Of a DNA stretch of 64,000 bases, positions 601 to 58,210 are shown piece after piece. Within the stretch, counting starts at the first letter, position 1. Every line of letters starts with the position of its first letter. This stretch comes from Thalia democratica (Eukaryota). The stretch is taken from assembly GCA_965202585.1 (NCBI GenBank), contig CBDBBG010000245.1:1-64000 (forward strand), in the 5' to 3' direction. The translations under genes and the position numbers were made by a program. The notes beneath the pieces were generated by a model. That model was not told the DNA's origin, ran no database searches, and saw only the letters and a list, made by a program, of their open reading frames with translations.

Positions 601-2699
601 TTTCATCTATATAATTTTAAGTCGAAGATAATACTTAAAGACACATAAAATACTATGTTATTAAGTTTGTATTTAAGATTTTTACTTTATTAATGATATT
701 AATCATGCATGTTAGATTATCATCTATAAATCTCTGTTTTTTTAAGTAGTTTTTTTATTTTAATATAATAGTTAAAATTTAAAAAAACGATTTCATTCAT
801 ATAAATTTCACTATAGGTTTTCCATTTTTAAAATTTTAAATGCGTCTTATTATATGTTTACTTTTTAATATACAAACCATTGGATCACTTCTAATATTTA
901 GGTAAAAAAATAACTTAATTTTACTTGAATTTCTATATTCACAAATTTTTATATCAAATCTATTTTTTTGGCCATCGCACAAGAGTGTATAACTGCGTGG
1001 AAAAAAATTAATAAATTTAAGCTTTAAAATAAATTGTTAAATCATAGACCAACATATTACTTACCGAAAAAAATAAAAGTGTTATGAATAATAGTTAAAC
1101 AAATATAATGTATTTCAGCGAGTAATTTTATTAAAAAAAATATCATTAAAAAAAAAATCATTTAGGATAGTTATAAATGTGTAATGAAACTTATGACAAG
1201 TTGAAATTCTAGTAAAATAATTAAAAAATAGCTAGTTATCTTAAACTAGATAATTATTTAAATTTTAAGTAATTTAAATAATTAAATGACTTGTAAATTA
1301 ATTAACAATGAAACTACTATTGTTCAAAAACTTTTTAAACCTTATAAAAATAATTACTCAGAGGTAATAGTAGAAAAGATACATGCAAATTTCATTTCAA
1401 CAATGTTTGTTGGCAAAATAATGTTTTCTATCGTTCGGTAAAAATGTGGACCGAACTTCCAAATAAACTAGTATCTTGCAAAAATCTTGAACATTTTCGA
1501 TTAAAGTTTTAAAAATTTGAATTGAATAGAATATTTACCAGTAAATTTTATGAGTAATTATTTTTGTTTATTTCTTTAACCATTGATTTGGTATGTGGTA
1601 TGTAGTTTATTGGTAGTTTAATTTGTAAGCAAAAACTTCCCCTTATAGATCTTAAGTACATCATATTTTTGTTTTTTTTTGCCGTCTATTGTTAATGTGC
1701 TTGGGGCTTTAGATTCTAAAATTATTGGATGCTCAGTTGATTTGTAAGCTAGATTTGTGAATTGTTGCTGCCACATGTTTGAAGTGATTTTTGACTGAAT
1801 TTGCTGTGGTGAAACTTTGAAAACATGATGAATGGCGAATAATTCTTGAGATCAATGTTCTGCAAGATAAAAATTTCTGTCTAAAGTTGAAAATGAATGC
1901 CGTTTGGAAAATTCTTGTTTGATGAAGAGTGGTTTTCAAGATGGTTCCTAGAATTTCGAGCCAGGTTCTGAAAAATTTGACAAAAGACGCTTGTTTCAAA
2001 GATTTGTTCTTGTGGAATGTACAATTGGAGATTGGTGGCTTTTGAATCGTTGAATATTTTTGTTGTGAAAGTTTGAATTTTTTTAGTTTGTGCCTTGTAT
2101 GGATTTTATGTTTGTTTTAACACTGTAATTTATTTTTTTATTTTTATTTTAGTGTCTTTGAATTTAAGTGGTTTAGGTTTGAATGCCTAGGTCGTTCGTT
2201 TGACAAAAAATTCAATAATAATAAATAACATTAAATACTCTGTATACAAATTATTACAATATTTCATACCAGAACATAAAATTTTATTAATTTTATTAAC
2301 CACGTTTTCGTGGTTTAAAAATAATTAACCTAGAAGTAGGTCGACATATATTTCCATTATTATTTAAATACGAGAAATAAAACAGGCTTTACTTTTTGTA
2401 GCCACGTACGTCACAAGTTAAAAAAGTATTGTTTTTCATCATAGTTTTTATTTAATTTCTGCAATTTGAAATGTTTCATGCATTTTATGTTATAGTTTTA
2501 TTAGTGATTATAACTGTAGCACCACAACAAAAATGTGTTTTAGTTTACATAACAAGCTCTTTATCAAACTTAAGAAAATGTGCTATTTTTAGATTATATT
2601 GTAAAAAATATTTATTTATAAACTGAACTTTTTTTTATTACTATGTAGTTATGTAAATGTTAGTTATTAATATTTCAATTAATGATTAAAACTAGCCTG

Positions 2700-2813
2700 T
2701 GTAGGATAATTAGACTATAGCTCATTTTAGTGTTTATGTTTATACTTGTTTTCTTTTCAGATTTTACATTGTTAATAAATTATTAAACTAAATTGACAAG
2801 GAGTTATTTTTCA
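2700..2813 (+). repeat. 5' LTR
   Basis: TGTAGGATAATTAG...GAGTTATTTTTCA; 112/114 identical to 7196-7309; AATAAA at 2774-2779. Confidence 0.97.
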
Positions 2814-2823
2814 TGTAAAATCT
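2813..2823 (+). promoter_or_regulatory. Primer-binding-site position, self-complementary to LTR 2759-2769 (candidate self-priming site)
   Basis: ATGTAAAATCT is the exact reverse complement of AGATTTTACAT in the LTR; there is no TGG-type tRNA PBS. Confidence 0.65.
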
Positions 2824-2847
2824 TATCAACAATCTGAGAAAAGTAAA

Positions 2848-4209
2848 ATGGTTATAGTAAAGTGCCCAATTCGTGGATGCGAGTTCCAGACGCCAGATCT
2901 ATCCGGTGATGTTGTGAGTAGCCTTCTCAACCTCCACAAAGTGGAGCATCAGCAAAATTCTGAGTTATCCAATATTGGAGTAATGCCAAATGCACCTCAA
3001 TTGATTCGACCAAGGGTTGACCGGGGGATCAGCTAAGAAACATGGCTTGCTTTCATTCGGAGGTGGGAAGCATTCAAGATTGGTTCGAATATAAGCAACC
3101 AAAACGCAAGCATACAGCTTTTTCAGTGTGCGCAGGACAAGCTTGGCGATCTTATGTTAGCAAGTGATCCTCGACTGATGGCCAAATCAGAAAGTTACGT
3201 TGCTAAACTGATGGAGTCGATTGCAGTCATAAAAGTTGCTATTGGTGTAAAGAGAGCAGAACTTATGAACCTACATCAGGACCATGATGAACCGTTCAGA
3301 ACGTTTGCCAAACGTGTACGAAGCAAAGCAGAAACCTGCAATTTCACTACAGTCAGTGAGTGTGACTGTGGGAAAAGCAATGTGACGAGCTACACAGAAG
3401 AAGCAATAAAAGACGTCATGCTCGCTGGCGTTGGGGATGATGACATAAGAAGAGAAGTTCTCAGTACTGAAGATATCTTATCCAGGTCATCATTTGATAT
3501 AATTTCCTTTATTGAAAGTAAAGAAATGGGACGCCATGCAACTGAGAATTCGCGGACCATATCTGCAGTCTCTTCCTTTCAACGTCAGAAGAAGGGACGT
3601 GTCAATATAGGAGATAAGTCCCAACATGTTCCGTGCCAGAACTGTAAAAGGCTTTTCTATCCTTTCAACGAAAAAGGTAACCAAAATAAAAAGCCTTTCA
3701 GATATTGTCTATCTTGTTGGCGTAGTCGATCAAAAAGGGTTAATGCTGTTCAAATCCAAGCTGATCGTTCGGATTTTATGCAACAAGATACCCAAATAAT
3801 GTCACTACACGCAAGTAAAAGAATCATGTTAAATAACACCATATTCAGCAAGAAGTCCTTGCGTAAAGCCAAGGCAACGACTGATCATCCTCGTGCATCA
3901 GTCAAGATTGCTAGACATGGCACAAACAAGTTTGCATGGGTAAGTGCTTTAGCTGATACTGGAGCACAGTCGAACCTTTGGGGGTGGAAAAACTTTCAGG
4001 AGGCTGGTTTTTGTAAGAAGGATTTAATGCCTGTATCCATCACAATTCGGGCTGCCATTAAAATTCCTATTAACATTCTAGGGGCTTTTAAAGCAACTTT
4101 CAGCGGAATGTCTCCAAAGAAGGAGGTTATCAGATGTGATGGAATTGTTTATGTAAGCGATTCAGTGACCGGATTCTTTCTCTCCTATGAAACCATGGTG
4201 ACCTCCTGA
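2848..4209 (+). pseudogene. gag: Retrotransposon Gag + aspartic protease (one original frame, premature TAA at 3034-3036)
   Basis: ORFs 2848-3036 and 3154-4209 are in the same frame. Gag-like AELMNLHQDHDEPFRTFAKRVRSKAETCNF; protease motif ALADTGAQSNLWG. Confidence 0.9.
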
Positions 4210-4775
4210 TTATTAATAAGGATTTTCCCACCATTGGATCTCAACTGCCTCATCAGCATTCTGAAGTTGCTGTAAGTTCAAATGAAAATGATCCGAATAG
4301 ACTGGAATCGCATAAAGATGTGCGCTTTATCACTCCGTTTGGCAGGTTCCCATGTACTAGAGCACCTCAAGGCTTTGTATCATCTGGTGACGGTTACAAT
4401 CGACGATTTGCAGCTATTTTATCTGATTTTGAAAAAAAGGAGAGGTGTGTTGATGACACCATATTTTTTGATTCAGAATTAGAGTGTCACTGGTGGCGAA
4501 CAATAGATTTTCTGTCAAAAGTTGGCAATGCAGGCATCATTCTAAATCCAAAGAAGTTCCAGTTTTGTCAAAAGTCCGTTGACTTTGCTGGATTTAGAAT
4601 TTCTGATGAACGTATAGAACCTTTGCCCAAATATCTGGATTCCATTCGCAATTTCCCAACCCCAAAGTCTGCCACAGATATACGCAGCTGGTTTGGTCTG
4701 ATAAATCAAGTCGCAAATTATGCCAAACTTCGTAAAATCATGGCACCGTTTAGAGATTTTCTCAGTCCAAAATGA
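4200..4775 (+). pseudogene. pol: Reverse transcriptase, C-terminal half only (N-terminal half deleted)
   Basis: FITPFGRF..APQGFVSSGDGYNRRF..RCVDDT..GIILNPKKFQF..VDFAGF..RSWFGLINQV. The upstream RT motifs are absent between the protease linker and FITP. Confidence 0.9.
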
Positions 4776-4819
4776 AAGTTTATGTGGACAGAAAAATTAA
4801 ACCAATCATTTAATGAATC

Positions 4820-5461
4820 ATTGACGCAATAAAGAGCGGTGTTCAAATTTTTGATCTTGGAAAACTGACTTGTCTTAGACCAGACTGGTCAAAGCAAGGA
4901 TTGGGCTACTTCCTTATGCAGAAACACTGCAAATGCAATAGCCGGTTACCAGATTGCTGCACCACCGGCTGGAAAGTGACGCTTGCAGGTTCAAGGTTTC
5001 TGAATGGGGCAGAAAAGAATTATGCTGCCATAGAAGGGGAGTCGCTTGCTATTGCTTGGTCATTAGAACAGACAAAGTATTTCACTAAGGGCTGCAAAGA
5101 TCTTGTGGTTGTTACGGATCATAAACCACTGGTAAAGATTTTTGGTGATCGCACCTTAAACGAAATTCACAACACGCGCATTTTTAGGCTCAAACAACGT
5201 ACTTTGCCATGGTTTTTTCAAGTGCATTACATGCCAGGTAAAACTAATCTATCGGCAGATGATGCATCGCGTTATCCAAGCTCGATTAGTGTAGTTAATT
5301 CATATGATAATGATTTGACTAACGAATCACTTCTAATTGCTTCATTGAGTAATGAAGTATGCCATTCAATGGCAATCACTTGGGAGGAAATTGTAGAAGA
5401 GACACTAAATGACAAAGTTCTTTCAAGAGTATCCAGGTGTATTGAGGAAGGTCGAAGCTAG
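4820..5461 (+). pseudogene. pol: RNase H domain
   Basis: RPDWSKQGLGYFL..YAAIEGESLAIAWSL..VVTDHKPL..ADDASRYP. Small deletion near 4820; stop at 5459-5461. Confidence 0.9.
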
Positions 5462-6866
5462 AAACATGATGAATCTTTGTCAGCGTATTTTAGATACGAT
5501 GATGCATTGTACTTAAGTGATGGGGCTATACTTTACAATGACAGAGTTGTAATCCCCGTCAGTTTACGATATCGGGTCCTCAACAAGTTACACTCGGCGC
5601 ACCAAGGAGTCACATCAATGCATAGTCGTGCCCAACAGATTGTCTTCTGGCCTGGTATTACACAAGACATTGTAGCAATTCAGGCCAATTGTCAAAGCTG
5701 CAACCGCAATTCACCTTCTCAACCATCATTGCCACAAGAAGCATCTGATCCTCCTACAAACCCTTTTGAAAAAATATTCGCAGATTTTTTTCAGTTTGCC
5801 CTAAACAATTTTTTGGTAGTCGGTGACAGGTTGCCGGGTTGGTCGGAAATATTTTCCACACCCAGCGGAACCTCTCAGGCAGGTTCGCGTGGGTTGATTA
5901 AGTGCCTACGAGTTTTGTTTTCCAGGTTTGGAGTACCCGAGGAAATATCGAGTGATGGTGGACCGGAATTTACGTCCAGTGCAACAAAGGAATTTCTTAA
6001 AACCTGGGATGTCACGCATCGAATATCTTCAGCTTACTATCCAAGATCAAACGGCAGAGCGGAAGTAGCCGTCAAACAGGTAAAAAGGTTGCTAAGATCA
6101 AATGTTGACGCTTCAGGAAGTCTGGACAATGACAAGTTTTTAAGTGCGTTGCTCCATCTGAGAAATACTCCTGATAGCGATTGTCAAGTGTCTCCAGCCG
6201 AGATCATATATGGACGTCAGCTGCGAGATAGTTTTTCATTCTTGAACAAACTTGACAAATTCTCCAATCCTAATGTGCGACCCATGTGGAGAAAAGCGTG
6301 GAAGCTTAAAGAAGAGGCGCTCCGTACAAGATTTGTTAAGAATTCTGAAGTACTTAACCAAAGAGCCAGGAATTTGCGGCCTCTCCATGTTGGCAGTAGG
6401 TGTTTACTACAGAACCAGAGTGACACTCATCCACGTAAATGGGACAGAAGCGGAGTGATAATGGAGGTGCTTCCACATGATCAGTATGTAGTCAGAGTTG
6501 ATGGTTCACGGAGACTTACTCGGAGGAACAGAAAATTTTTAAGGATGTACAACCCAGCCTCAACAAGCATTGAAGCAAAAACTTCCCATAGTTGGAGCAG
6601 TAATCTACCAAGCTCACATGAGTGCAATGTTGGTCCTCAACGTCCTGATTCTTCTGTAAAGATTACAGAGGATTCCAGCAGTGCCAATAGTGGTAAAACC
6701 AGTGAGGTTGAAGCGGATCATGAAGAGGTTGAGGAAGAGTACATTCCTGCTCCTATAGTTCCCAAAAAAAAATAAGGTGCCGCTTGCTTTGCGTAGGTTG
6801 AAAGACTTCAATGCGCCAGGGAGGCTTGAAAGTGGAGTACTCCAAAGTAGAAATCACCGTAAGTGA
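5462..6866 (+). pseudogene. pol: Integrase (HHCC-DDE + C-terminal domain)
   Basis: LHSAHQG..CQSC zinc finger; FADFF / ISSDGGPEF / SNGRAEVAVK catalytic motifs. After a +1 shift in the A-run at ~6770 it continues KVPLALRRLKDFNAPG.. to TGA at 6864-6866. Confidence 0.92.
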
Positions 6867-7187
6867 AGTCTGTTTGTTCCTGTTTATACAAAATGTTTGT
6901 GCTGAGTGTTCAATTGATGCTGATAGTGATGATTGCTGAGCCAGGAAGGATTCAGCGTGAAATAGCATGAATTTGTATTGTTTTTGATTTATTTAGTGTG
7001 TTTTATTGCAGTTTTGATTTTCTTCAAATAAATCCCTTGTTTAAAGATTTTTTATTTAAGTCAATTGAGTTTTTTTTTAATGCATAAAATTTAGTTTCAT
7101 CTTAGTAAAATATTTTTGTTACTCGTTTAAATCCCCTCTTGACGAGCTATGTCATTGCCTTAAACTTGTTATTATCTTTAATGAGCT

Positions 7188-7195
7188 GGAGGGGA
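7188..7195 (+). promoter_or_regulatory. Polypurine tract
   Basis: GGAGGGGA immediately upstream of the 3' LTR TG. Confidence 0.85.
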
Positions 7196-7309
7196 TGTAG
7201 GATAATTAGACTATAGCTCATTTTAGTGTTTATGTTTTTACTTGTTTTCTTTTCAGATTTTACATTGTTAATAAATTATTAAACTAAATTGACAAGGAGT
7301 TATTCTTCA
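7196..7309 (+). repeat. 3' LTR
   Basis: Copy of 2700-2813, followed by TSD GCCTG. Confidence 0.97.
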
Positions 7310-10300
7310 GCCTGTTTATTAACAAAAGTTTTTATTGTTATTTAAGCTGCATACATCACAATGGTCTTTAAGTTGTATCCAACTATTTTTCATAATTATA
7401 AGAAAATCAGAAAAAAATATTATATAAATATATATATAAATTACGTAAATTTAATAAATTTTAATTCATAAACTAATAACGTTGTTGAATATATTTAGGT
7501 ACTTAAAGTAATTTAGAAGTGTTTTTATTTTAAGTATCCAATATAATTAAAATTCTAATACAAAACACTGAGCAAAAAGAAATAGACTTAAGGTAACTTT
7601 CACATTATTTTGTATCCGTATTTTTAATAATTAAGTATACCCTTAAATAAAGGAAAATTTAAAATCGACTTATATGAAATAGATAAAATTAGAGTTTTAA
7701 AAGAAAAAAAAAGTTAATGAGAGTAAGAAATAAAAATAAACAAACTTATTAAGTTTATCACCAACATGTACTAAAATTTTTACTGTTGTGAATTTAAAAA
7801 TCAGTAATGTGAAAATTTGTTTTTTTTTTTTAGGAAAACAATACTACTAAAAAATTTAAGTTTTTTAACCACATTTCAGTGGATTTTAAATGACAGATAA
7901 TTCATATGTAAAACTTATAAATAGCAAAGTTGTTACGTGAACAATACCTTTCAGTTTAAGCTTTTTAAGTCACAAAAAAACTAAAATTACTATTTATCTT
8001 TTAAAAGTTTATTTTTTGCATAAAATTTCAAATAAGCTATAATGCTCAATACTTGTTATGAAATTATTTAGAAAAAACTTTAGCTTAGTGGATATATATT
8101 ATTGAAGTTCACTTTTGTAAATATTTAAAAACAAACATTATGTTTTTAAAGTTTGTTTTTAGCCTGAAATTTCAATAAAATTTTAATGTTAAGTTATTGT
8201 AATGAAATGATAAAAAAAACTTTTGCTTAGTGGTAATAATGCCTAAAAATTAACTTTTGTAAAGAGGTTTAAAAACACACAGAAAAAACAAAAGCTTCAA
8301 ACAAAGCTGATAAAAGTCACTTCAAAGAATATTTTTATAATAATTAAACATAAAACTTTGTTTTTGTAAATATTTTTTCAGAAATTAAATAAATCGCAAG
8401 TTCGTAACTTTTTATTTAAATATTTTAATACTTTCTCATTTAAGTATAGATCTAACTTAAATTCAGTAATTTTAAATAGTTAGGTTCAAAGGCTGAAACT
8501 TATGGTTATAAAAATATAATAAATTGTTAACAATCTTAACTTATAGCATTTTGTAGAAAGTTTGTAAAAATTTGGATAAAATCAAATGTTTTAATTATAA
8601 ATTTTTGTATTTGTTTTGCAACATAATTGTTAAAGTGCAAAAAAAGTAATAAACTTTTTAATGACTTAAATATTATTCTATAATTTAGCCACGTTATGTT
8701 GGCTGCTAAAAATCTACTTCTACCGTTTTAAAAACTAGGACATAATGTTAAAATATAATTTAATACATTTTTTAAAAACCTAAAATGATCATTTGCGAGG
8801 TAAATACTGTGACGTTACTATGGTACTTACGGCTTGTTTTTGTGTTTATTTTTGCTACTTAGTGAATAACCAATAACTTGCTTTCTTTTTTTCGTAATAG
8901 TTAAAAAATGAGTTTCAACTATACTAATTATTTATATCATAACCACAATTTTGAGTGCTCACCTTAAGTTAAATAGTACTAGCTTTTGTATTATACAACA
9001 ATAAAAGTAACTTAAAATAAAATAGTTCTATGTTTATCAAGTCAGCTATTTAGGGAAAAAATAGTATTTCAGAATTTGCCTGTAAAAATAATAGTTACAA
9101 TTTTAATTTTAACTCTTTTTTTTAATTAAACTATATTTTAGTGGCTTTTAAACTACAAATTTTACCTCGTTTAGGTTCGAGTTTTCACAGGATATTTTCT
9201 CTTAGCTAATTTATATTTTTTTAATAATATAACAATGAATGTTTGCTATTAACATGACATCACTGCGATTTTGTGGCTTTAGTTAAAATAACATCAAGAA
9301 ACTATTTTAAAACTTTGAATTATTTAAACATGTTAGTATATACTGTAGATTATTCATACTTCTTAGAACTACTCATACAATTTACTTAATATGTAGCTTT
9401 TTTAATTTACCATCATGAAATTTTAATAACTGCTTTTATTAACAATAAAATAATATTAAATAAACAATAGTATATAATGCTTGCTATTTACAATATTTTA
9501 ATATATTTAAAGAATTATATACTTTGATGCTAAAAATATGTCAATACTAAATGGTTTACGTGATTGGAAACTTTTTTGAATTATAATTAATGAATAATTA
9601 CACACTTAAATCTTATTATGTGACAAGTAACTTTTCTGAAGTAGGTTATAATTATTAAGTTAATTGTAACAAGTAGTACTAAAAGAAAGTTCTCACGTAA
9701 AAAAAAGAGTGTTTTTTTTTAATTTATGTTTTAGCAACATTATAATGGCTTTTTCATTTTGAAAAGAAATGGCTTAAATTTATATAAAAAAATCTGTAAT
9801 GAATATTTAGAGGAAAAATAATGTGACGTCACTATGAATTTTAGCGTTCATTTAGGTTTTTGTTTTTATAAAAACAGATAAGCCGTTTTGGTTTTTAGTT
9901 TTTAAACCTTCTAAAAAGCTCATACTTTTCGAAAGTACCAAGCGAGAAGAAAGACTGTTTAGTTTTTAAGCTGTAATAAAGAACATTTGTGTAAAACAAT
10001 ATACTAAAAACCATAATCTGTGTTTACATTATATTAAAAGTATTTAACATTATTTAAGTTTGAATGAAATTGGCATAAGTAAAAAGGAAACCTTAACTAG
10101 TTTTTAATTACAGATTGATTAATAAGATTGATTAATAAGATAAAATATAAAAATACATTTATGTACTAACTAGATAGTATGATGTATATGACTAAAACTG
10201 AACTTAGATGTGTTTATGTTTCATTTGTATTTAACTTAAATTTGATCGAAATACATAAAAAGATTTAAACTTAGAATCAAAGTTGTGATAATTTAGAGTA

Positions 10301-13300
10301 TCTACAGTTTAAAGATGTATCTTAAACAGGTTCTTTGCAAAACAACAAAAAGTAATTTAAATGATTTTTTATAAATTTTCTTATAAATCTTAAAAAAATC
10401 AACTATATAGTTTACAGTAAATTAAATTTTTCATACTAAGACTAATATTTTTTGAAAATGAATACATTTTGTTAAACTACAAAATTGCTAGTTAAATAAG
10501 AGCAGTTTTACTTAACAACTTAAATTTGTATATAATATAGGTTTAAACGAAAACTAATAGTAGCTCTTTTTGAAGTATACCAAAAATAAAATAACTTTTT
10601 GAGATACAGGTAAAACTAGATAAACATTAGCAGAATTGTATTGATAGTTTTAGCCACTTTTTAGTAGCTTTTAAATCGGTCGTTTAGCGACTGAAATGGA
10701 AACAGAGTCATTTATACTTTGAAAGCAAATTAATATAAAAGAAATGCTGCAAAAAACGTTTGTGGTAAGAATAGTGTGACGTCACTACGAGGTTTATCGT
10801 TTTTGATTTGGTTATTAATTTTTGTTTATCATTAGTTTTCCACCTACGTGAAACTATTTATTAAATACTTTTTTTATCTAATACTATTTGTTTTTAGTAT
10901 AAACTCTATTTATTTGCTATCCATTAAAAATTCAACCAAATTTTCTTATTATCTACATTACAAAAAAAAAAGCATATTTTGCAACATATTAGTAAATGAA
11001 CAAATATATTTTCTACATAAAAATGATTTACTTATGTACAAAATATTTAATATTTCAATAAAGTGTTTATTACAAGTGATATTTTTATTAATCTCATTAA
11101 TGGAGTGAAATTTTTTTTTTATTAATAAGTTTACGAATTAACAATCTTGTAATTTTTAATAATTATTTTCTGATTTTTTTTTCCTTAGCTTTAATTTCCT
11201 TAGTTGTAATTCAAAGTCACTATGTTTAAATGAAGTCTAAATCTTTACTTGATTAGGCAAGTTGAAATGTTTTCAGATATTTATAATTTTTGGTAATTAT
11301 GAAAAACAAGTTATACTTGTACTAACTGTTGATAGACTTGTACATTTTTTATAACCATATTTATAATAAAGTCTAATTCATTACTTTATTAGGCAAATTG
11401 AAATAGGTTTAAGATCATTAAAATTTTTTTTAATCATAAAAAAGCAGTTATCTTGTACTAACTGAAAATAGATTTATAGAATTTTGCAACCACATTTTAA
11501 TGGTTATTAAATAAAAATGCAGCCGGATGGCAGAATGATACAAATCTACAAAAAATTAACAATATGTATATATTAGAAAATGAAACATGGATTTGCTTTT
11601 TGTAGGCAATTACGTCACAAGAAGTAAAACAATTATTTAGAATTTTGTTATTAGCCCTAACATTTATGCTAATTAACACTGTTATACAGACAAGAATAAT
11701 AACTTTTTGACTTAAAACACAATATTAAAAAAAAAGAATATCACAGCATTTACAATTCGAACATTGTCACATAACATTAAGAATAGAACGCACTATGTAT
11801 TTTTGGTTTATATTACCAGCAATTCCTTCTTAAATCATTTATATTGTTAAACGTAGTTAGAACTTGATTAGAAAATCCAGTTAAAGTAGTTACTGTATTT
11901 TTTAGTTTAACTAATCATAATAAAAAAACTTAAAACAAAATTGACTTCATCTACTTTTATTTTGTTTTTGGATAATAATAATCGATTTTAAATGTGAATC
12001 TTCAACAACTATCGACAATATCAAGATAATGAAGATTAATTTTAATGGAAATGGTAAAAGAAAATATAATATGTATTGCTGCTTGTATTCAATTACAACG
12101 CAAGTAGCTTTTTTTTTTACTGTCTTAATTTCTGAATTTAATTTTACTAAGCATAAAAATACACACTAAAATAGTTGTTTTAATTTTATTTTGAAACTTA
12201 ACATTTTTTTTTATTTTGTTTCAATAATATATTTAAAGTTAATTTTTATATAAGTATTAACATTCTATGGATTGGTTCTCACTTTTAAGAAGATAAAACA
12301 ACATTACTATTTATTTTAGTTTAATAACTGTACTTATATGTATTACTGTTTAATAAAATTTCATAAAAACAAAAACCTCATAGCTTTTTACTAAACGGAG
12401 TTGTTATAAGGAAAGTAATATTTGTTAGCCAAAGCCATATCTTTCTACCACAATATATTTAATAAAACATAGAAACTTCACAAAAATAAATATAATAAAC
12501 ATTAAAACTTATTGTTGCAAAACTTTTAACTTGGTGATGTGACGTCAGTTGAATTGAAGCAATATTTTATGATAACTTTTATTTACACTTTAATTTTAGT
12601 TCAGAACACTTTTAGGTCAAATATTTGCAACTGTTTTTACACTTTTTATAACATTAAAGAACCTAAAAGTATACTAAAAATTGACAGCTTAAAAACTTTA
12701 TTTTTATTTTTTAGTAGTGACTAAAAAACTTGGTAAACATAGCATTAGATTAAAGACTTTACTAGATTATAAACTTAATCATATTACTCAAAAATAGTTT
12801 AACAACAACCATGATTATGGTAACAAAAAAAAACTGATGCAAAATTAATTAATTGTTTTATAAAATATATTAAAAGAGGAAATAAAAGTAATTTAAATAA
12901 TTATTTTACTAGTTTTTACATTCTAAAAACTTAAATAAAAGAAACTTCATATCTTTGAATTTTACACCAGTTGTTAAAATAGTTGCTGTTGTATAAAATG
13001 AGAAAGAATTATTTTATTTATATTAATTTTTTATAGTTTTTATACAAACACTCCGTATAATACTGGTTAATTAAATTTGATTAAAAACTTGAGTATTATA
13101 ACATTTATAAGTTTATAAATAAAACTAGCGTTTATTGATTTAAAAAAATTACGTTTTAAGTAGCAAAATTCTATTATTTATTATTGTCCAATTTTCATGC
13201 TGTTTTGTCGATTAAATTTGTATTCAAGTATTTTTTTTACTTATTAAGTATTTTATTTAATATTTTCTTTAGACGTTTTATATCTTAGTTTTATTGCATT

Positions 13301-15229
13301 ACTTGTTTTTAATAGACTTATAATTTTATTTATTTGATAATTCTTAATCATTTTTCTTAAAAACAAAACTCAAGTGTTAATAGATTTTGACTTGAGTCTA
13401 ATCAAAGTAGTTGTATTATTTTCTAATGAAACTATTATTCAAACGATAGTCTAAAATTTAGTTTGTTGAAAAATTTTATATTACTACGTTACAGTGGTTT
13501 CCATATTAGAAAATTCATGTTAATCTACTATGTAATTACTATAAATAGGCAATGTTTAATTACAAGAAAATACAACGAAAGTTCTTATCAATGACGTCAC
13601 AAGTTGCATTAAAAATTTGATGTTTTTATAAATAACTTCCGAAATATGTATTTTTAAACATTACCATTTTTATTGAAATTAATGTTTAAACTTTGTTTAA
13701 GTATTATACTATATTTAAACATATATTGTTTTTAAAAGCAAGTCACTAGTTGCAAAATAATGATTACTACTTGTTGTTTTTTAATTTTATCTTCAACGTA
13801 TATATAAAGTTATATGTATAAAATATAGTTATATTTATAAAACACATTTAAAAAGTTATTAAAATTTCCAAAAAAAGCGTTATTAAAGGTTTTAAACTTT
13901 ATAATTGTACTTCCTTGCTCTATTTTTTACAAAGGCTATCTGTCAAATACTAATCTATATTGTTGCATTTAAATTGTGGTGCAACTACTTAAACTATGTA
14001 TCATTTCACATATTGTATAAATCATTTTACGAGTAAGAACTTAATTAAATAGTTTATTCAAACTCGCATATGCAATAAAACTGAACCACCGTAAATTTTA
14101 TTTTTTAACTAACTTTTCCTCAATTTATTATATTTTAGATCAAATAAAACACTTTTAATTGTGTTAGTAAAAGCTATTTTTTAATTTTTATTCAACTTGT
14201 CAATATATCTTAATTTAGTAAGCTCAAGAAATCTTAAACTAATATATAATTATAAAGGACCTATTTAAGTAATTTAATAATCAAATAGACTTTGTTTTTA
14301 TTTAATTATGTTAGTTTTTATGTTAGAATTTAATTTTTGAAAAGCTCTAGGACACATCATAACATAAGTATCTTTAAAGCTTTATTTTTAGATTAAAAAA
14401 TATATACACTAGGAATTCTTGATTAGGCACTTTTTGGATGTCTTTAAGAGTAAGAATACTTTTTATTTGAAATAATTTTTATGTGGACATCATAAAAAAC
14501 TTTTTCTGCACTAGAGCTTAATATATAAAATTAATAATTTTGTTAAGAAAATGGTCTAAAGTATAATAGTATGAGGTGTGAAAAAAAATATTAGTTAATT
14601 TAGTGTAGTTTTAAAAAAAGTTGTTAATTTAATTAAAGTTATAATGTTTAATAACTAAAAACATCACAAAATGATAATAGAAATATTAACATCTCTAAAA
14701 TAATAATTAACAAGGTATTCAAAGTCTCAAATTAACTAATTATAGTTGCTATAAAATCTAAAAACGCCCCGATATCGTTGTAAGCAAAGATTGTTAGTCT
14801 CTACATAATTGTTGTTTTTATTTAAGCTTGTAAAGTATCTAAATTTTACTGTAAACAGTATAAATTAAGTTCAAGGCTAGGTTAACTTTTTAAACAATTA
14901 ACTAAAATATACATCAAAAACATAGAAATTTAACAATAGTTTAGATTTTAGTTCTCTATAAAAATTTTCATTTTAAAGACAAGCAATAAAAAAAGTAGTA
15001 ATATCAAATTCATATAAAGTACATATTTGAAATAACATAAAATGTGTTAAGTTATTAAAATGGTAGTTTTTAGTTTAATAACTTAAGTTTAACAGTTTAT
15101 AGACCTATAGTATAACATAAAATATAATCTTCTAAAAGGTTATTAAATTTTTGCTTATTAAGATTAAAAATAGTTTTCAGTTTATAATTATGATCTTACA
15201 TTGTCAAGAGATATCTTCAACTTTGTATG

Positions 15230-16126
15230 AAAATCGTTTTTGCAATTAGGATGAGTTTAAGATTGTTTTGTTTTTAGGAAGAAAATGTTATTATTCTGCT
15301 ACAAATGAAGTTATTAAACTAAAAGTTTCTAAATTTTAAATCCTTATAAATTGACTCCTATGTTAACACCTAGATTCTTTCAGCAGAACAGCTGTTATTT
15401 GTTCCGATATTTATGTACTTGGAGGATATAATGGAAATTATGATTGGACATCTTCTTTTGAAATGATTTCTTCAGAGACAAAACAATGGAAAAGTTAACA
15501 TCTTTTTTTGATGAAACAGTTCATTACAGTTTTTGTTCGTTTATGAAACGTATATATGCATTTGGTGGTTATATTAGAAATTCTATATATAGAAACAAAT
15601 GTTAAATGTATAAGATCAAAGGCAATAAGTGGTATTAAGTAGAAAGTTTACAAACAGAAAGAAGTGATTCAGCTTGTACAGTTTTTGAAGGTAATATTGT
15701 TTTTACTAGAGGTTTTAGTAAAAATGTTATTTGAAATCAGTTGAATCATATGATCATCATGAAAACAAATAGATTTTTTTATCTGATATGATTGCAGTTA
15801 AAAAATACCATTCTGCAATTAGTATGGGTAACAAAATGTTTGTAATAGATGTTGCACGTTCTGAAGAGTATGAAAATATTTTTAGAAAATTTACCTTGTT
15901 TAGTTTTAAACGACTAATAGGTCAATTTACTATTACTTATTTTAAAACACTTTTTATCAGTAACAAGTTGATCATACTTGATGACGTAGACTTTTGTAGT
16001 CAAGAATTGTATGTGTACAACGTCGATAAGAATAAATTGGAATCCGAAATCAATCTACTGAAAGACAATTTTAATTTCCAGCTTAATGTAGTTTTAAAAA
16101 ACTTCCCAAACTTCAGAGAAACCTAA
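15230..16126 (+). pseudogene. Kelch-repeat (KLHL-like) pseudogene
   Basis: Across stops and frameshifts: IYVLGGYNG..FEM..TKQW, IYAFGGY..KW, SACTVFEGNIV..LKSVESYDHHENK, HSAISMGNKMFVI, i.e. successive Kelch blades. No convincing BTB/BACK region is readable upstream. Confidence 0.85.
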
Positions 16127-17589
16127 AATAAGATAAAGTTAATTTTAAATACAAGTTATGTAAAATTAAGTTTTATATTTTAAGTGACAATTAAGTTTGT
16201 TATGATTTTAATTTTATAGTTTTTTTGTGTTGTATGGAAATCCTTTCGTTGTAATAAAATCGCTTTAGTAGTAAGTTTCTTTTTCATATCGTAATATTAT
16301 TGCTAACTTGAATATCTTTTTCTATCATTATTATTTTGACAATATAATTTTTATGCAAAATAATAAAATTATATTTTTTTTTAAAGGATTATAGGTTGAA
16401 TGTATTCTTTATTAATAGATAGGAAATAATTTAATTACATCATCAAGATTTATCATTTCTTTAGACTTAAAGCTATAAAAACATTAACTTAGTACTTTTT
16501 AGTACAATTTGTACTTAGTAAACAAGTAAGTCATTTTAAAACTATCTAAAATTATTTTATTTCTACCTTGTCCGACCATTTAATATACAGATTTGAAGAT
16601 TATCAAAATTATCATTACATGAATAACAATACTTAGCTTAATAGGCTTCAAAAAAGATAAAATCGAGTTTTTAAAATGATATAAGATTAACAAAGAACAA
16701 AGGCTTACCTTAATCTGGTCACTTTTGAGTATTTTATTAATAATTATTTTTAGAAACAGTTTACTAGTCATTCTAATTAATAACAAACTTATTGAATACT
16801 ACATAAATATCTTTGATTGCAGTTGTTACTTATACGTCTCAGTGTAATAATTAACTAAAATTTTGTAGTATTTAACAAATCCAAAAAAAATTTTGAGATA
16901 GTTTTAAGATTTGTAGTCTTTTCGACTTACTTTATCTGAAAAAGCTTAAACAAAGTTAAAGTGGTTTACAAGCTCCAAGTTTTGACCATTAATAGGATTG
17001 TTTTTTCAGTAAACATTTATTACGACTGAAATTAACATAAAAGATTATTCTAACTTTACCTGTCATTAAGCAGACCTAGTTTGGAAACACTAACTCTATA
17101 GTCTCAAAAAATTAGGCATTCAGTGAAAAAGTAATTTATTTCAAAAATAAACAAAACTGATATTTATAGCTTGTACAGTTCAAGTTTGTATAAGTACAAG
17201 GTATTTTAAGTCCTTTTTATTTAAGAGCTTTATAATTTTTAATAATAGGTATGGATACGCCCTGTTACTTATTCAACTTGCTTCAGAACGTATGTATGTA
17301 ATTAAATGATGCCTTACAATGCATACTTTTTTCAAAAACCTCACACAACACATGACCATTGAATCACAAACCAAAGTTTTCAACAATATTTTTTACTTCT
17401 GAGTTTAATACCGTAAAAAAGAATTATTTTATGATCAAAATATCAAGTTATTTCTAGTTTTAAAAACTTGCAATGAAAAGTTTTAAGCAATGTTGAGGAA
17501 GTATTTCAAATAAAGATCAGATTAACAGTGTGGACCAACTACTTGTATTTACAAATATAATCTAACGTACAATAAAAACTTTTAAACTA

Positions 17590-43239: not shown

Positions 43240-43339
43240 NNNNNNNNNNNNNNNNNNNNNNNNNNNNNNNNNNNNNNNNNNNNNNNNNNNNNNNNNNNNN
43301 NNNNNNNNNNNNNNNNNNNNNNNNNNNNNNNNNNNNNNN
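43240..43339. other. Assembly gap (100 N)
   Basis: Run of exactly 100 N. Confidence 1.
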
Positions 43340-53710: not shown

Positions 53711-55437
53711 CAAGGTTTTCCAAAATGGACTGTTTTAGAAAATTAGAGGGCCATAATTTGCAAAGGGGCTGGGAGCATAGGTCTTAATTTTAAACTTTCA
53801 CTAGATATCCTGGAGTTGATGATGAGAGGCAAAAACAAGTATTTTGGTATTTAGGAGTAGTTTCAAAACCTATAGTAGATATTGAGTGAGAGTTTTAAAC
53901 TCACACTAGACCAGGGTTTCCCAAAGTGGGTCATGAGCTGGAGGGGTGCATAAGGACATAGTTTTAAACTTAGACTGAATATTCTGGAGTAAATTAAGAG
54001 AAAAGCAAAAAAAAAGTCCTGGGCAATTTTCAGTGGGCTGGCAATGGATATTGACAATTTTATGACTACACTGTTAATCCAAGAGTTTTATTAGATTGTT
54101 AAGAGCTGGGTGTCTTCTTTTAAAAACTCGGTTTAGTTATATTCTGCTTAAAGTATATTAAAAGTTACGTCTAGTTAAATATAGCAAAATTTTATCAAAA
54201 TAAAGGTCTTAGCAGCTGATAAAGAACACCTTAAACGCTTTTATAAAAATAGTTTTATTAGGTTTTTTCTTTTCTTTAGTTAAATTTAAAAATCAAAATT
54301 CTTTGAATATATAAAAAGAAAAGTGTATTATTGGTCATTTTTAAAAACTGCTATTCTTTCCCAAAATTCATAGGAGTTTTTAGGGCAAAATAGGATATGT
54401 TTAAGAGTTAAATATCTGAAAACACCCATCACAGACATATACTTTTTATTCTTTATCTTTTAGCTCACATGACAAGGAATCTATATACAAAATAACAATA
54501 TAGAGGGCAAAATAGGATATGTTTAAGAGTTAAATATCTGAAAACACCCATCACAGACATATACTTTTTATTCTTTATCTTTTAGCTCACATGACAAGGA
54601 ATCTATATACAAAATAACAATATATAGGGCAAAATAGGATATGTTTAAGAGTTAAATATCTGAAAACACCCATCACAGACATATACTTTTTTTTTTTTTA
54701 TCTTTTAGCTCACATGACAAGGAATCTATATACAAAATAACAATATATAGGGCAAAATAGGATATGTTTAAGAGTTAAATGTCTGAAAACACCCATTACA
54801 GACATATACTTTTTATTCTTTATCTTTTAGCTCACATGACAAGGAATCTATATACAAAATAACAAAAATTTTTATTCAAGAATTTTAACTTATTTTAGGG
54901 TTTATACAAACAAAATTTTAATTTCTATTTACTTTTTTTATAAATAAATGTTAAATAAAAAAAAATAAAAGTTCTAAGACTTTGAGTTTTTATATCACTT
55001 ATCTTATTTTCTAAATTCATTATATAAATTTTAATAAAAGTGGTAAAAAAAGTTAATTTAAATAAGTATTTCAAATATTTTTCTGTAACTTTCTGCAAGC
55101 AAATTTTTGACCAAAACTAGGAATAATTTTGAGTAGTTTATACATTGTAAAAGGTAAAAACTGACTAGATTTAAACTTACTTAACTTTAAAATAAGCATG
55201 AAAATAACAAAACCAATTTTAAAACAAAGAAATCAAGTTCTATCTAACTATGTTTTTCACTTAGTTTGATTTTATATTCAGCAAAATTATTCTTTTTCAG
55301 ACTATGGCCACTTGAACCTCATTTTCAGCCCACTGTGTATTTGAAGGGATTTTTTTTTGTGAAATCTTACAAGAAGAGGCCATTGTTTTATAATTTCTTC
55401 AAAGAGGCCTTAGGAAAAAATTTTTTGGGAAACCTTG
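53711..55437 (+). mobile_element. Composite Charlie-type element carrying a second MITE end and the 122-bp repeat
   Basis: Both ends have the CAAGG variant TIR (CAAGGTTTTCCAAA / TTTGGGAAACCTTG); flanks TTCTATAC / ATCTATAC (7/8); second left end CAGGGTTTCCCAAA at 53912. Confidence 0.6.
54382..54865 (+). repeat. Tandem repeat, 4 x ~122 bp, near-identical
   Basis: Unit AGGGCAAAATAGGATATGTTTAAGAG...CTATATACAAAATAACAA starts at 54382, 54504, 54626 and 54749. Confidence 0.97.
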
Positions 55438-57367: not shown

Positions 57368-58210
57368 GGAACGGGTTACTTTTACACGAGCGTCACTTTT
57401 TCACTGAGAAACTTTTGCACGAAAGGTCATTTTTGCACGAGAGTAAAAAAGTATATAAAAAGAAAAATAAATAAAAACTAATAAATGAATATAACCAAAA
57501 TATATACATAAAAAGATTAATTAAAAAAAAAAGTTACCAACCTATGGCAAGGGTTAGTGGTTATAGTGTTAGTAAAACTGTAAAAGAAAAATAACATAAA
57601 AAATTAAAACATAAAAAATAAAATAAACTAAAAAAAAAAAAAAAAAGGTAGAGAAATTACCGACCGAAGGTAAGGGTTAGGGTTAACAGTGATAGAAAAA
57701 AAAATGTATTTAATGAAAATTATTAATAAAAAAAAAATAACAGGAAAATAAAGAAAAACGTATAAAATTAATAAAAAAACTAGATATTCAAATTTTTATT
57801 CTTTCCATTCATAACTAAGTTAAAGTGTAATAATCCGTAACCCACAGAAACATATGTTGATACATTAAAAGGAAAATTACTGTATAATTAGTTTTTATAA
57901 AAAAAACTAAAAATTTAAAAAAAAAATTTACCCCACTTAAAGCAAGGTTAATAGTGATAAAAAAAACTAAAGTTAGTAAAAAATTAATAGATTTTTTAAC
58001 CTGTGCATAAGCGTCTTCGTGCAAAAGTGTCCCCTTGTGCTAAAAAGACGCTCGTGCAAAAGATTCGCCGTAAAAAATTGTCCACTCGTGCAAAAGTGAC
58101 CCTGCGTGCGACAGTGACGCCGTGCAAAAGTGTCCCCTCGTGCTAAATTGACGCTCGTGCAAAAGTTACCTTTCGTACATAATTCACGGTGTGCAAAAGT
58201 AACACACACC
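57368..58210 (+). mobile_element. TGCAC-rich MITE, long copy
   Basis: GGAACGGGTTACTTTTACAC / GTGCAAAAGTAACACACACC ends; expanded CGTGCAAAAG repeats at 58010-58200; internal GGTAAGGGTTAGGGTTA. Confidence 0.75.

Follow-up and report, generated by a model that had tools for sequence, protein, structure and literature searches.

A diverged array of probable small nuclear RNA-type mini-genes in AT-rich DNA of Thalia democratica

Introduction

Ancient tandem gene arrays, such as the 5S and small nuclear RNA (snRNA) repeats, combine regular spacing and a conserved core with free spacers. Among the snRNAs of the Sm class, for which the binding-site consensus is RAU3-6GR, the U7 snRNA is encoded by one or a few copies, and consists of a free 5′ part, a U-rich single-stranded site and a 3′-terminal hairpin. 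Tunicates trans-splice. In Ciona the spliced-leader (SL) RNA is 46 nt in length (PMC7986045), and in nematodes the type-I PIWI-interacting RNA (piRNA) loci, also called 21U-RNA loci, represent very many individually promoted mini-genes, each of unique sequence, within a megabase domain of one chromosome, served by an snRNA-type machinery (PMC6436959, PMC6317315, PMC7917550). In this study, we analyzed the first 64 kb of contig C254 in the 802-Mb assembly of Thalia democratica (hereafter the window; GC about 22-28%), and propose from its sequence that the old stretch at 2.3-13.7 kb, which precedes a young array of similar units at 17.8-37 kb, probably belongs, as a diverged part, to a very large family of snRNA-type mini-genes arranged in a cluster.

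At every motif site of this old stretch but one (12540), the minus strand carries in order a box (TGACGT(C/A)A), a TATA-like element 43-50 nt downstream, a head of ~15-25 nt that differs between unit types, the sequence AUUU located 4-5 nt before the stem, a hairpin (6-bp stem with a 6-8-nt loop) and an A-rich tail, together forming a core of ~150 nt. These units share with the Sm-class snRNA genes, especially that of U7, an external box as it is present at the organism's own U1 and U6 snRNA genes and, in the predicted short RNA, a free 5′ part, a putative U-rich single-stranded site and the 3′-terminal hairpin, but they differ from U7 in forming several hundred diverged members with varied heads, and from the class as a whole in having no Rfam match, a loose Sm-like site and a TATA-like element, though the predicted distance from box to start resembles that of the TATA-less U1 snRNA genes. 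The clustering of individually promoted mini-genes on one chromosome is shared with the 21U-RNA loci, but the Ruby motif there is replaced here by a TGACGTCA box plus TATA, the ~15,000 loci there correspond to hundreds here, and a constant predicted tail of AUUU and hairpin is found here. With the Ciona SL RNA genes the units share a very short, in their case predicted, Sm-class RNA, many copies and a single 3′ hairpin (PMC7986045), but neither a constant leader nor a conserved GU donor exists here, and in contrast to ancient tandem arrays the units are not homogenized, position lineages being kept across at least ten block duplicates. What is new here is the old multi-lineage layer, its block structure on sequence C1 of the assembly, the limits of the constrained interval and the covariation in the stem.

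Results

Regular spacing of the motif sites

The earlier note on this DNA had described ACGTCA-type motifs at eight sites, which fall into a regular spacing of ~0.94 kb once a 4615-bp long terminal repeat (LTR) insertion is removed, and both observations were reproduced. ACGTCA is present at 2408 (unit U1), 8810 (U3), 9824 (U4), 10777 (U5), 11612 (U6), 12540 and 13592 (U8), four of these being full TGACGTCA palindromes, and at 7966 (U2) the one-mismatch variant GTGACTTA stands where the paralogues read GTGACGTA; the units are numbered by these box positions. Within 1501-14115, after removal of the LTR element, TGACGT occurs 11 times against a mean of 1.08 (maximum 6) in 1000 dinucleotide shuffles, a ten-fold enrichment that none of the shuffles reached. 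The spacings are 943, 844, 1014, 953, 835, 928 and 1052 bp, with a coefficient of variation of 0.079, a regularity that no placement among 100,000 random ones equaled. Tandem Repeats Finder reported no array of ~0.94 kb, the longest period searched being 500 bp, and a strict pattern of box plus hairpin matched only U1 and U6, being too narrow for counting units.

The insertion that interrupts the register is the following.

2695..7314, plus strand: LTR retrotransposon insertion including the target duplication (element at 2700-7309), in the spacer between U1 and U2

All the hallmarks of an LTR retrotransposon were found, including two LTRs (2700-2813 and 7196-7309; 114 nt each, 98% identical, with TG..CA ends), the target-site duplication GCCTG on both sides, and reverse transcriptase, RNase H and integrase domains (RVT_1, RT_RNaseH, Integrase_H2C2 and rve) on fragmented open reading frames (ORFs), with insertion plus duplication adding up to 4615 bp. 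Four paralogous blocks (L011, L014, L015 and L018) continue uninterrupted across the insertion point, and these empty sites are direct proof that the element was inserted.

Homologous cores in unalignable spacers

The units and relics identified in the window are listed below.

2294..2425, minus strand: unit U1 (type A), looks intact; box GTGACGTA at 2408-2415, TATTTAAA 43 nt downstream, then the head (GC-rich, 2329-2345) and AAUUAUUUUU; perfect 7-bp hairpin at 2298-2315
7857..7985, minus strand: unit U2 (type A), decayed; box GTGACTTA, box-TATA interval with deletions when compared with paralogues, hairpin at 7866-7884 with a U.U mismatch
8676..8832, minus strand: unit U3 (type B), nearly intact; box GTAACGTCAC with one change, AUUUUU, 5-bp hairpin AGCCA/UGGCU at 8687-8704
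9729..9867, minus strand: unit U4 (type B), decaying; box TAGTGACGTCACA and TATA intact, deletion before the hairpin, C.U mismatch in the stem
10632..10811, minus strand: unit U5 (type B), looks intact; box TAGTGACGTCACA, TATA 46-48 nt downstream, hairpin AGCUAC/GUGGCU with one G.U
11476..11640, minus strand: unit U6 (type A), looks intact; box GTGACGTAATTG with TATATACA 44 nt downstream of it, head GC-rich (11518-11537), then AUUUUU and a hairpin at 11488-11505
11807-11926: second weak relic trace
12055..12137, minus strand: decayed relic with box TGCGTTGTAATTG
12470..12560, minus strand: site 12540, CTGACGTCACA box, TATA-like element 50 nt downstream, no hairpin
13472..13608, minus strand: unit U8 (type A), decayed; box GTGACGTCATTG intact, two hairpin mismatches here, hairpin intact in the paralogue of block L012
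41750..41898, minus strand: further type-A unit outside the range noted before; box, TATA-like element, perfect hairpin AACCAC/GUGGUU

For detection of homology, one profile was built for each unit from its own paralogues and then searched with nhmmer against the other units. The cross-unit matches were confined to the core of ~150 nt: the U1 profile matched U6 (E 1e-13), U8 (3e-7) and the hairpin part of U2 (3e-4); the U4 profile matched U5 (2e-14) and U3 (3e-9); U4 itself was matched by the profiles of U5 (2e-8) and U3 (2e-5), U1 by those of U6 (4e-7) and U8 (1e-5), and U6 by that of U2 (1e-4). The 41.8-kb unit was detected by the profiles of U1 (9e-15), U6 (2e-10) and U8 (2e-8). In pairwise Smith-Waterman comparisons against 100 dinucleotide shuffles, the cores reached z values up to 12.4, while spacer z ranged from -1.7 to 1.8, with one pair at 3.8. 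Seven of the eight sites are therefore homologous cores in unalignable spacers, and the previous impression that the rest of each unit cannot be aligned is borne out. As to the features of a tandem array, regular spacing, common orientation and core homology are present and spacer homology is undetectable.

The count of eight ancient units needs revision. Site 12540 has a counterpart in one other block copy only (L009), and its membership in the family is not demonstrated, but one or two further relics lie at 11.8-12.14 kb, of which that at 12055-12137 is matched by the U1 profile at E 0.028, the profile of the U7 region matching U1 at 0.031. The two relics together probably correspond to a unit, 'U6b', of other block copies. 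The hairpins and the GC-rich patches beside them were found where they had been reported, but the stems at 9824 and 13592 are imperfect and 12540 has none. Site 12540, with 50 nt from box to TATA, comes near the U6 snRNA genes in this distance (52 nt), and this orphan might drive a different small RNA ending at a run of five U ~95 nt further on.

The units fall into two types, A (U1, U2, U6, U8 and the 41.8-kb unit) carrying TTGTGACGTAATTGgCTACAAA, and B (U3, U4 and U5) carrying ATAGTGACGTCACAnTATT. Between box and TATA, CAAACGCTCGTTTTATTTT is present in many type-A members and TCGCAAAnATTCnTTGCAGATTTTC in many type-B members within C1:13.43-14.94 Mb; both are absent from the U1 and U6 snRNA promoters, and may mark a family-specific factor. 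The region of ~70 nt downstream of the U1 hairpin (2215-2290, AAAATTTTATGTTCTAGTATGAAATATT...) is ~80% conserved among eight copies of this type, the other unit types being without such an extension, and it could be a 3′-end signal or due to chance. When the GC-rich head of U6 was used for a target search, it detected its own paralogues and one sense-strand match with 2 mismatches, but nothing else.

A box shared with the snRNA genes

The box TGACGTCA(C/T)A lies upstream of the U6 and U1 snRNA genes of this genome, and also heads units U3, U4, U5 and U8 and site 12540, while the variant TGACGTAA heads units U1 and U6. The U6 snRNA genes carry aTGACGTCACAAg at -83 and TATATATA at -31, and the U1 snRNA genes carry the same box at -73/-75 with no TATA. 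Box and TATA are separated by 43-50 nt in the units and by 52 nt in the U6 snRNA genes, the start site of the units being a predicted one.

Constrained interval and putative RNA stem

Identity was determined for landmark-based segments pooled over six unit types, with 4-10 paralogous copies each, using unit-wise alignments across the block copies, which are ten 10-kb loci (L009-L018). Against 0.65 for the spacers, identity was 0.67 in the 40 nt upstream, 0.80 in the box, 0.73 from box to TATA, 0.75 in the TATA, 0.73 in the head, 0.79 in the AUUU region, 0.80 in the stem arms, 0.83 in the loop, 0.68 in the 8-nt tail and 0.61 in the next 50 nt downstream. Compared with the spacers, the Mann-Whitney test gave p values of 4e-4 (box), 6e-4 (AUUU region) and 2e-5 (stem), these being indicative only since the pooled columns are phylogenetically non-independent. 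When the block copies were compared in 20-nt bins, they turned out uniformly 64-69% identical, and the excess constraint was not seen. On these segment values, the constrained interval extends between the box and the hairpin's 3′ arm. The claim that only a hairpin and GACGT survive needs correction: the TATA, the AUUU motif and the tail survive as well.

The hairpin itself showed covariation. Among 64 hairpins of all types, 91.4% of the pairs are standard, against 85.3 ± 0.8% after shuffling and 20-43% with slid partners. The stem contains 28 double-change cells against 8.7 expected, with double changes at 4 of the 6 pairs, and the covariation score was reached by none of 500 shuffles. At the second pair from the outer stem end (pair 10-27), A-U occurs 26 times, G-C 16, C-G 5 and G-U 8. 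The type-wide non-Watson-Crick states are all G.U on the minus strand, while A.C states are singletons, which favors a stem formed by minus-strand RNA and disfavors a palindrome acting as DNA. In the predicted RNAs of U1, U5, U6 and U6b, the head folds into a small hairpin, separated from the 3′ hairpin by a U-rich single-stranded stretch, with fold z values of -3.0 for U1 and -3.1 for U5, but that of U6 (-0.7) is no better than shuffles, and U3 forms only a weak head helix (z -0.2). AUUU is conserved at more than 90% in all types and predicted to be unpaired, and its flanks vary (AUUUAAAAG, AUUUUUAGC, AUUUGCAG).

The proposal of purifying selection thus gains support from the box, AUUU region and stem (0.79-0.80 against 0.65 for spacers) and from the compensatory stem changes, but cannot be extended to the units at 7966, 9824 and 13592, which are decaying. 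By their sequences, U1, U5 and U6 look functional, with U3 as a borderline case, and U2, U4, U8 and the ~12-kb relics look like pseudogenes.

Block copies and size of the family

In a genome-wide search for members by BLAST-type and pattern searches, paralogues of the old units, 72-95% identical, were all located in C1:13.4-14.9 Mb or on small unplaced contigs, with eight paralogues of U1 in block copies and 30 paralogues of U5 in the genome. The ten block copies are colinear with the window over U1 to U6, partly beyond, and the order of units is kept. Unit types group by position and not by block, each position forming its own lineage across at least ten copies, and there is therefore no sign of conversion between neighboring units.

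A composite pattern of box, TATA-like element and hairpin with a 6-nt loop gave 254 genomic matches against 0 in the reversed control, 254 being a lower bound because hairpins of other loop lengths are excluded; among the first 100 matches listed, 98 lie in C1:13.43-14.94 Mb. On this count the units are apparently lineages of a family several hundred strong on one chromosome, and not a private relic array. As judged from the old array, the family is not a recent amplification.

In block L009 (position 4573, corresponding to window 8820-9684) one unit is missing, and U3 is fused to U4 at the common TGACGTCAC box, which looks like unequal crossing-over between adjacent units. A contig of sequencing run X3 shows a similar skip, from 8967 to 9636.

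Relation to the young array

The layout of the young array, derived from 18-20 of its units, consists of a TGACGTAATTG box, a TATA ~44 nt downstream, ~30 variable nt, AAUAUUUGCAG, the hairpin ACCAC-8 nt-GUGGU and UAAA. That the old units have the same layout, as the earlier note proposed, holds in that box, TATA, AUUU, hairpin and A-tail follow one another in the same order, at distances agreeing within ~10 nt. The individual scores are weak, but they are bridged by U6b, a unit type well kept in five block copies and decayed in the window, with the following positions.

L011:7432-7575, L015:7370-7513, L013:7406-7549, L014:8419-8563 and L017:3757-3900: U6b, stem ACCCAC/GUGGGU, site AAUUAUUUGA

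A covariance model built from the young units and scored on the old stretch (17.5-kb search) gave marginal E values of 0.055-0.7 for the old units, with a full-length match of 18.6 bits to U1. The 41.8-kb unit was scored by this model at E 0.037. U6b, ~95% identical among the five copies, was its best match outside the array, being detected in seven block copies (E 0.003-0.02), and the 40 best matches in the 200 kb searched included U1-type sites of six block copies. Conversely, the U6b core profile matched the 41.8-kb unit (2e-7), U6 (3e-4), U8 (1e-3) and U1 (5e-3), and then, at E 0.1-0.65, five units of the young array; strand and register were correct in every case, and 6 of the 10 matches listed were near full length. 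These bridging matches argue for placing old and young units in one superfamily, though the single scores are weak. The high identity of U6b was considered as evidence of selection and rejected, since ~0.9 kb upstream is equally alike and the identity therefore reflects recent copying of a sub-block.

Presumptive SL RNA genes and other features

The Ciona-type leader (PMC7986045) followed by GT was found at 1048 positions in the genome against 22 in the reversed control. Presumptive SL RNA genes, with a 16-nt leader, GUAAGU and a 6-bp hairpin AAGGAA/UUCCUU, are located in 15-kb tandem repeats and near contig ends (C26, every ~15.1 kb; C9:9868; C10:9275; loci L034, L035, L038 and L039). The 16-nt leader followed by GTTTT occurs at ~1000 dispersed sites (including L033, L036, L037 and L041), several of them in inverted pairs (L041, L033), as if it were the terminal inverted repeat of an element resembling a miniature inverted-repeat transposable element (MITE).

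ARAGORN found no tRNA genes, and the minus strand at 7.3-14 kb contains no ORF of at least 80 amino acids and no coding potential. No match to U7 (RF00066) was obtained in the window at the gathering score or at E up to 5, the best genomic match (25.6 bits, below the 34-bit cut-off) lying elsewhere.

Several duplications were noted. Immediately upstream of the box of the decayed U2, a 144-bp segment is tandemly duplicated (7994-8281; 2 copies with 75% identity), and a local duplication lies near 11.36 kb. The segments 25-1303 and 15746-16559 are both 80-84% identical to one and the same region of L013, L017 and L018, and such copies of one sequence on both flanks of the old block suggest a higher-order period of ~11 kb after removal of the LTR element. 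Unrelated tandem repeats are present at 54381-54865 (122 bp x 4, 97% identity) and 58017-58170 (18/34-bp repeat containing TCGTGCAAAAGTGAC), and the window includes a 100-N gap at 43240-43339.

Discussion

We consider it likely that the old stretch belongs to a clustered family of snRNA-type mini-genes. The stretch is a tandem array of 7-8 units ~0.94 kb apart, the spacers of which have diverged beyond recognition; the array was later duplicated as a whole, giving at least 10 block copies within C1:13.4-14.9 Mb, and an LTR retrotransposon then landed between U1 and U2 of the window copy. Transcription is predicted to start ~31 nt past the TATA-like element, as in the U6 snRNA genes, which would place the box near -75, as in the U1 snRNA genes. 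The product would be an RNA of 45-60 nt, in which a type-specific head, often folded into a small 5′ hairpin, would be followed by a single-stranded, U-rich Sm-like site and by a 3′-terminal hairpin, and the excess of conservation, starting at the box and ending at the 3′ arm, fits such a transcript. Runs of five U would stop RNA polymerase III, and since several units carry such runs before the hairpin, RNA polymerase II would be favored. Our best guess is an Sm-class, guide-like RNA, the head of which would give specificity.

Several points weigh against this assignment. A search for RNA sequencing runs covering the stretch found none, and the contigs of the repeat family from four sequencing runs are of DNA type and uninformative on expression. 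Start site, polymerase and 3′ end are all predicted. No Rfam family matched the window at the gathering score or at E up to 10, the Sm-like site consists of AUUU plus purines only, and single scores of the young model on old units are weak. The excess of conservation among block copies is moderate, pooled over non-independent columns, and invisible at 20-nt resolution for U3 and U4; the identity of U6b extends equally into its upstream ~0.9 kb; and many copies are without the box CpG or have a broken stem.

Part of these observations would be expected if most or all units of the window were dead relics of a family that is or was functional elsewhere, with cores recognizable by descent and by occasional gene conversion from active copies. 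The disabling changes in U2, U4, U8 and the 12-kb relics agree with this explanation, as do the within-type core identity of U3 and U4, which equals that of the spacers, and the frequent loss of the box CpG among paralogues. We judge it unlikely for the window as a whole, because U1, U5 and U6 keep every element, the 20-nt head of U6 is identical in three paralogues that are 88-95% identical overall, the pooled elements exceed the spacers with sharp boundaries at box and 3′ arm, and the types group by position and not by block, with no sign of conversion between neighbors. The units might also act as DNA-level modules, in which a site of the cAMP response element (CRE)/ATF type, TGACGTCA, and the TATA promote a longer non-coding transcript and the inverted repeat represents a protein-binding palindrome. 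TGACGTCA is indeed the classical CRE palindrome, and no clear terminator or 3′ box was identified in the units, but the same box stands at a fixed distance upstream of bona fide U1 and U6 snRNA genes, conservation ends at the 3′ hairpin arm with 0.61 downstream, and pairing is kept through A-U, G-C and C-G, with long-lived G.U and not A.C, rendering this explanation rather improbable.

Polymorphic SL RNA genes, as in Trichinella or Hydra, with the heads as leaders donated to mRNAs, would account for the predicted size of 45-60 nt and for the combination of head, U-rich site and 3′ hairpin, which resembles the Ciona SL RNA (PMC7986045). However, the heads differ from type to type and also inside a type, and at neither level is a GU donor conserved between head and AUUU. 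The genome's Ciona-type leader plus GUAAGU is found in 15-kb tandem repeats, with no TGACGT box within 120 nt upstream and with a different hairpin. Given no constant leader or conserved GU donor, and presumptive SL RNA genes with different flanks, we rejected SL identity as very improbable. Short hairpins and TATA-like strings are common in DNA of 22% GC, but chance motifs are excluded by the profile, Smith-Waterman and spacing tests, and a mobile element such as a short interspersed nuclear element (SINE) or a MITE is hardly tenable, because the cores are fixed in at least 10 colinear block copies, have an external promoter, and lack terminal repeats and target duplications.

Beyond the family of mini-genes that we favor, the units bring to mind, by analogy and as a doubtful extension, a chordate 21U-like system, in which a domain of 1.5 Mb would hold several hundred individually promoted, snRNA-type genes for a large repertoire of short, Sm-class-like guide RNAs. 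It is equally speculative that the heads would diversify while promoter, U-rich site and hairpin stay, within sub-arrays so old that the spacers lost all similarity. A few, narrow literature searches found no such organization outside the nematode piRNA clusters.

As shown for this stretch, profile searches from paralogous copies can recover gene arrays in featureless-looking DNA. The old array provides independent lineages for covariation tests, and intact copies, U1, U5 and U6, for detection of the RNA. If expressed, the units would constitute a family of snRNA-type small RNAs that is large, old and still diversifying, each type having its own head.

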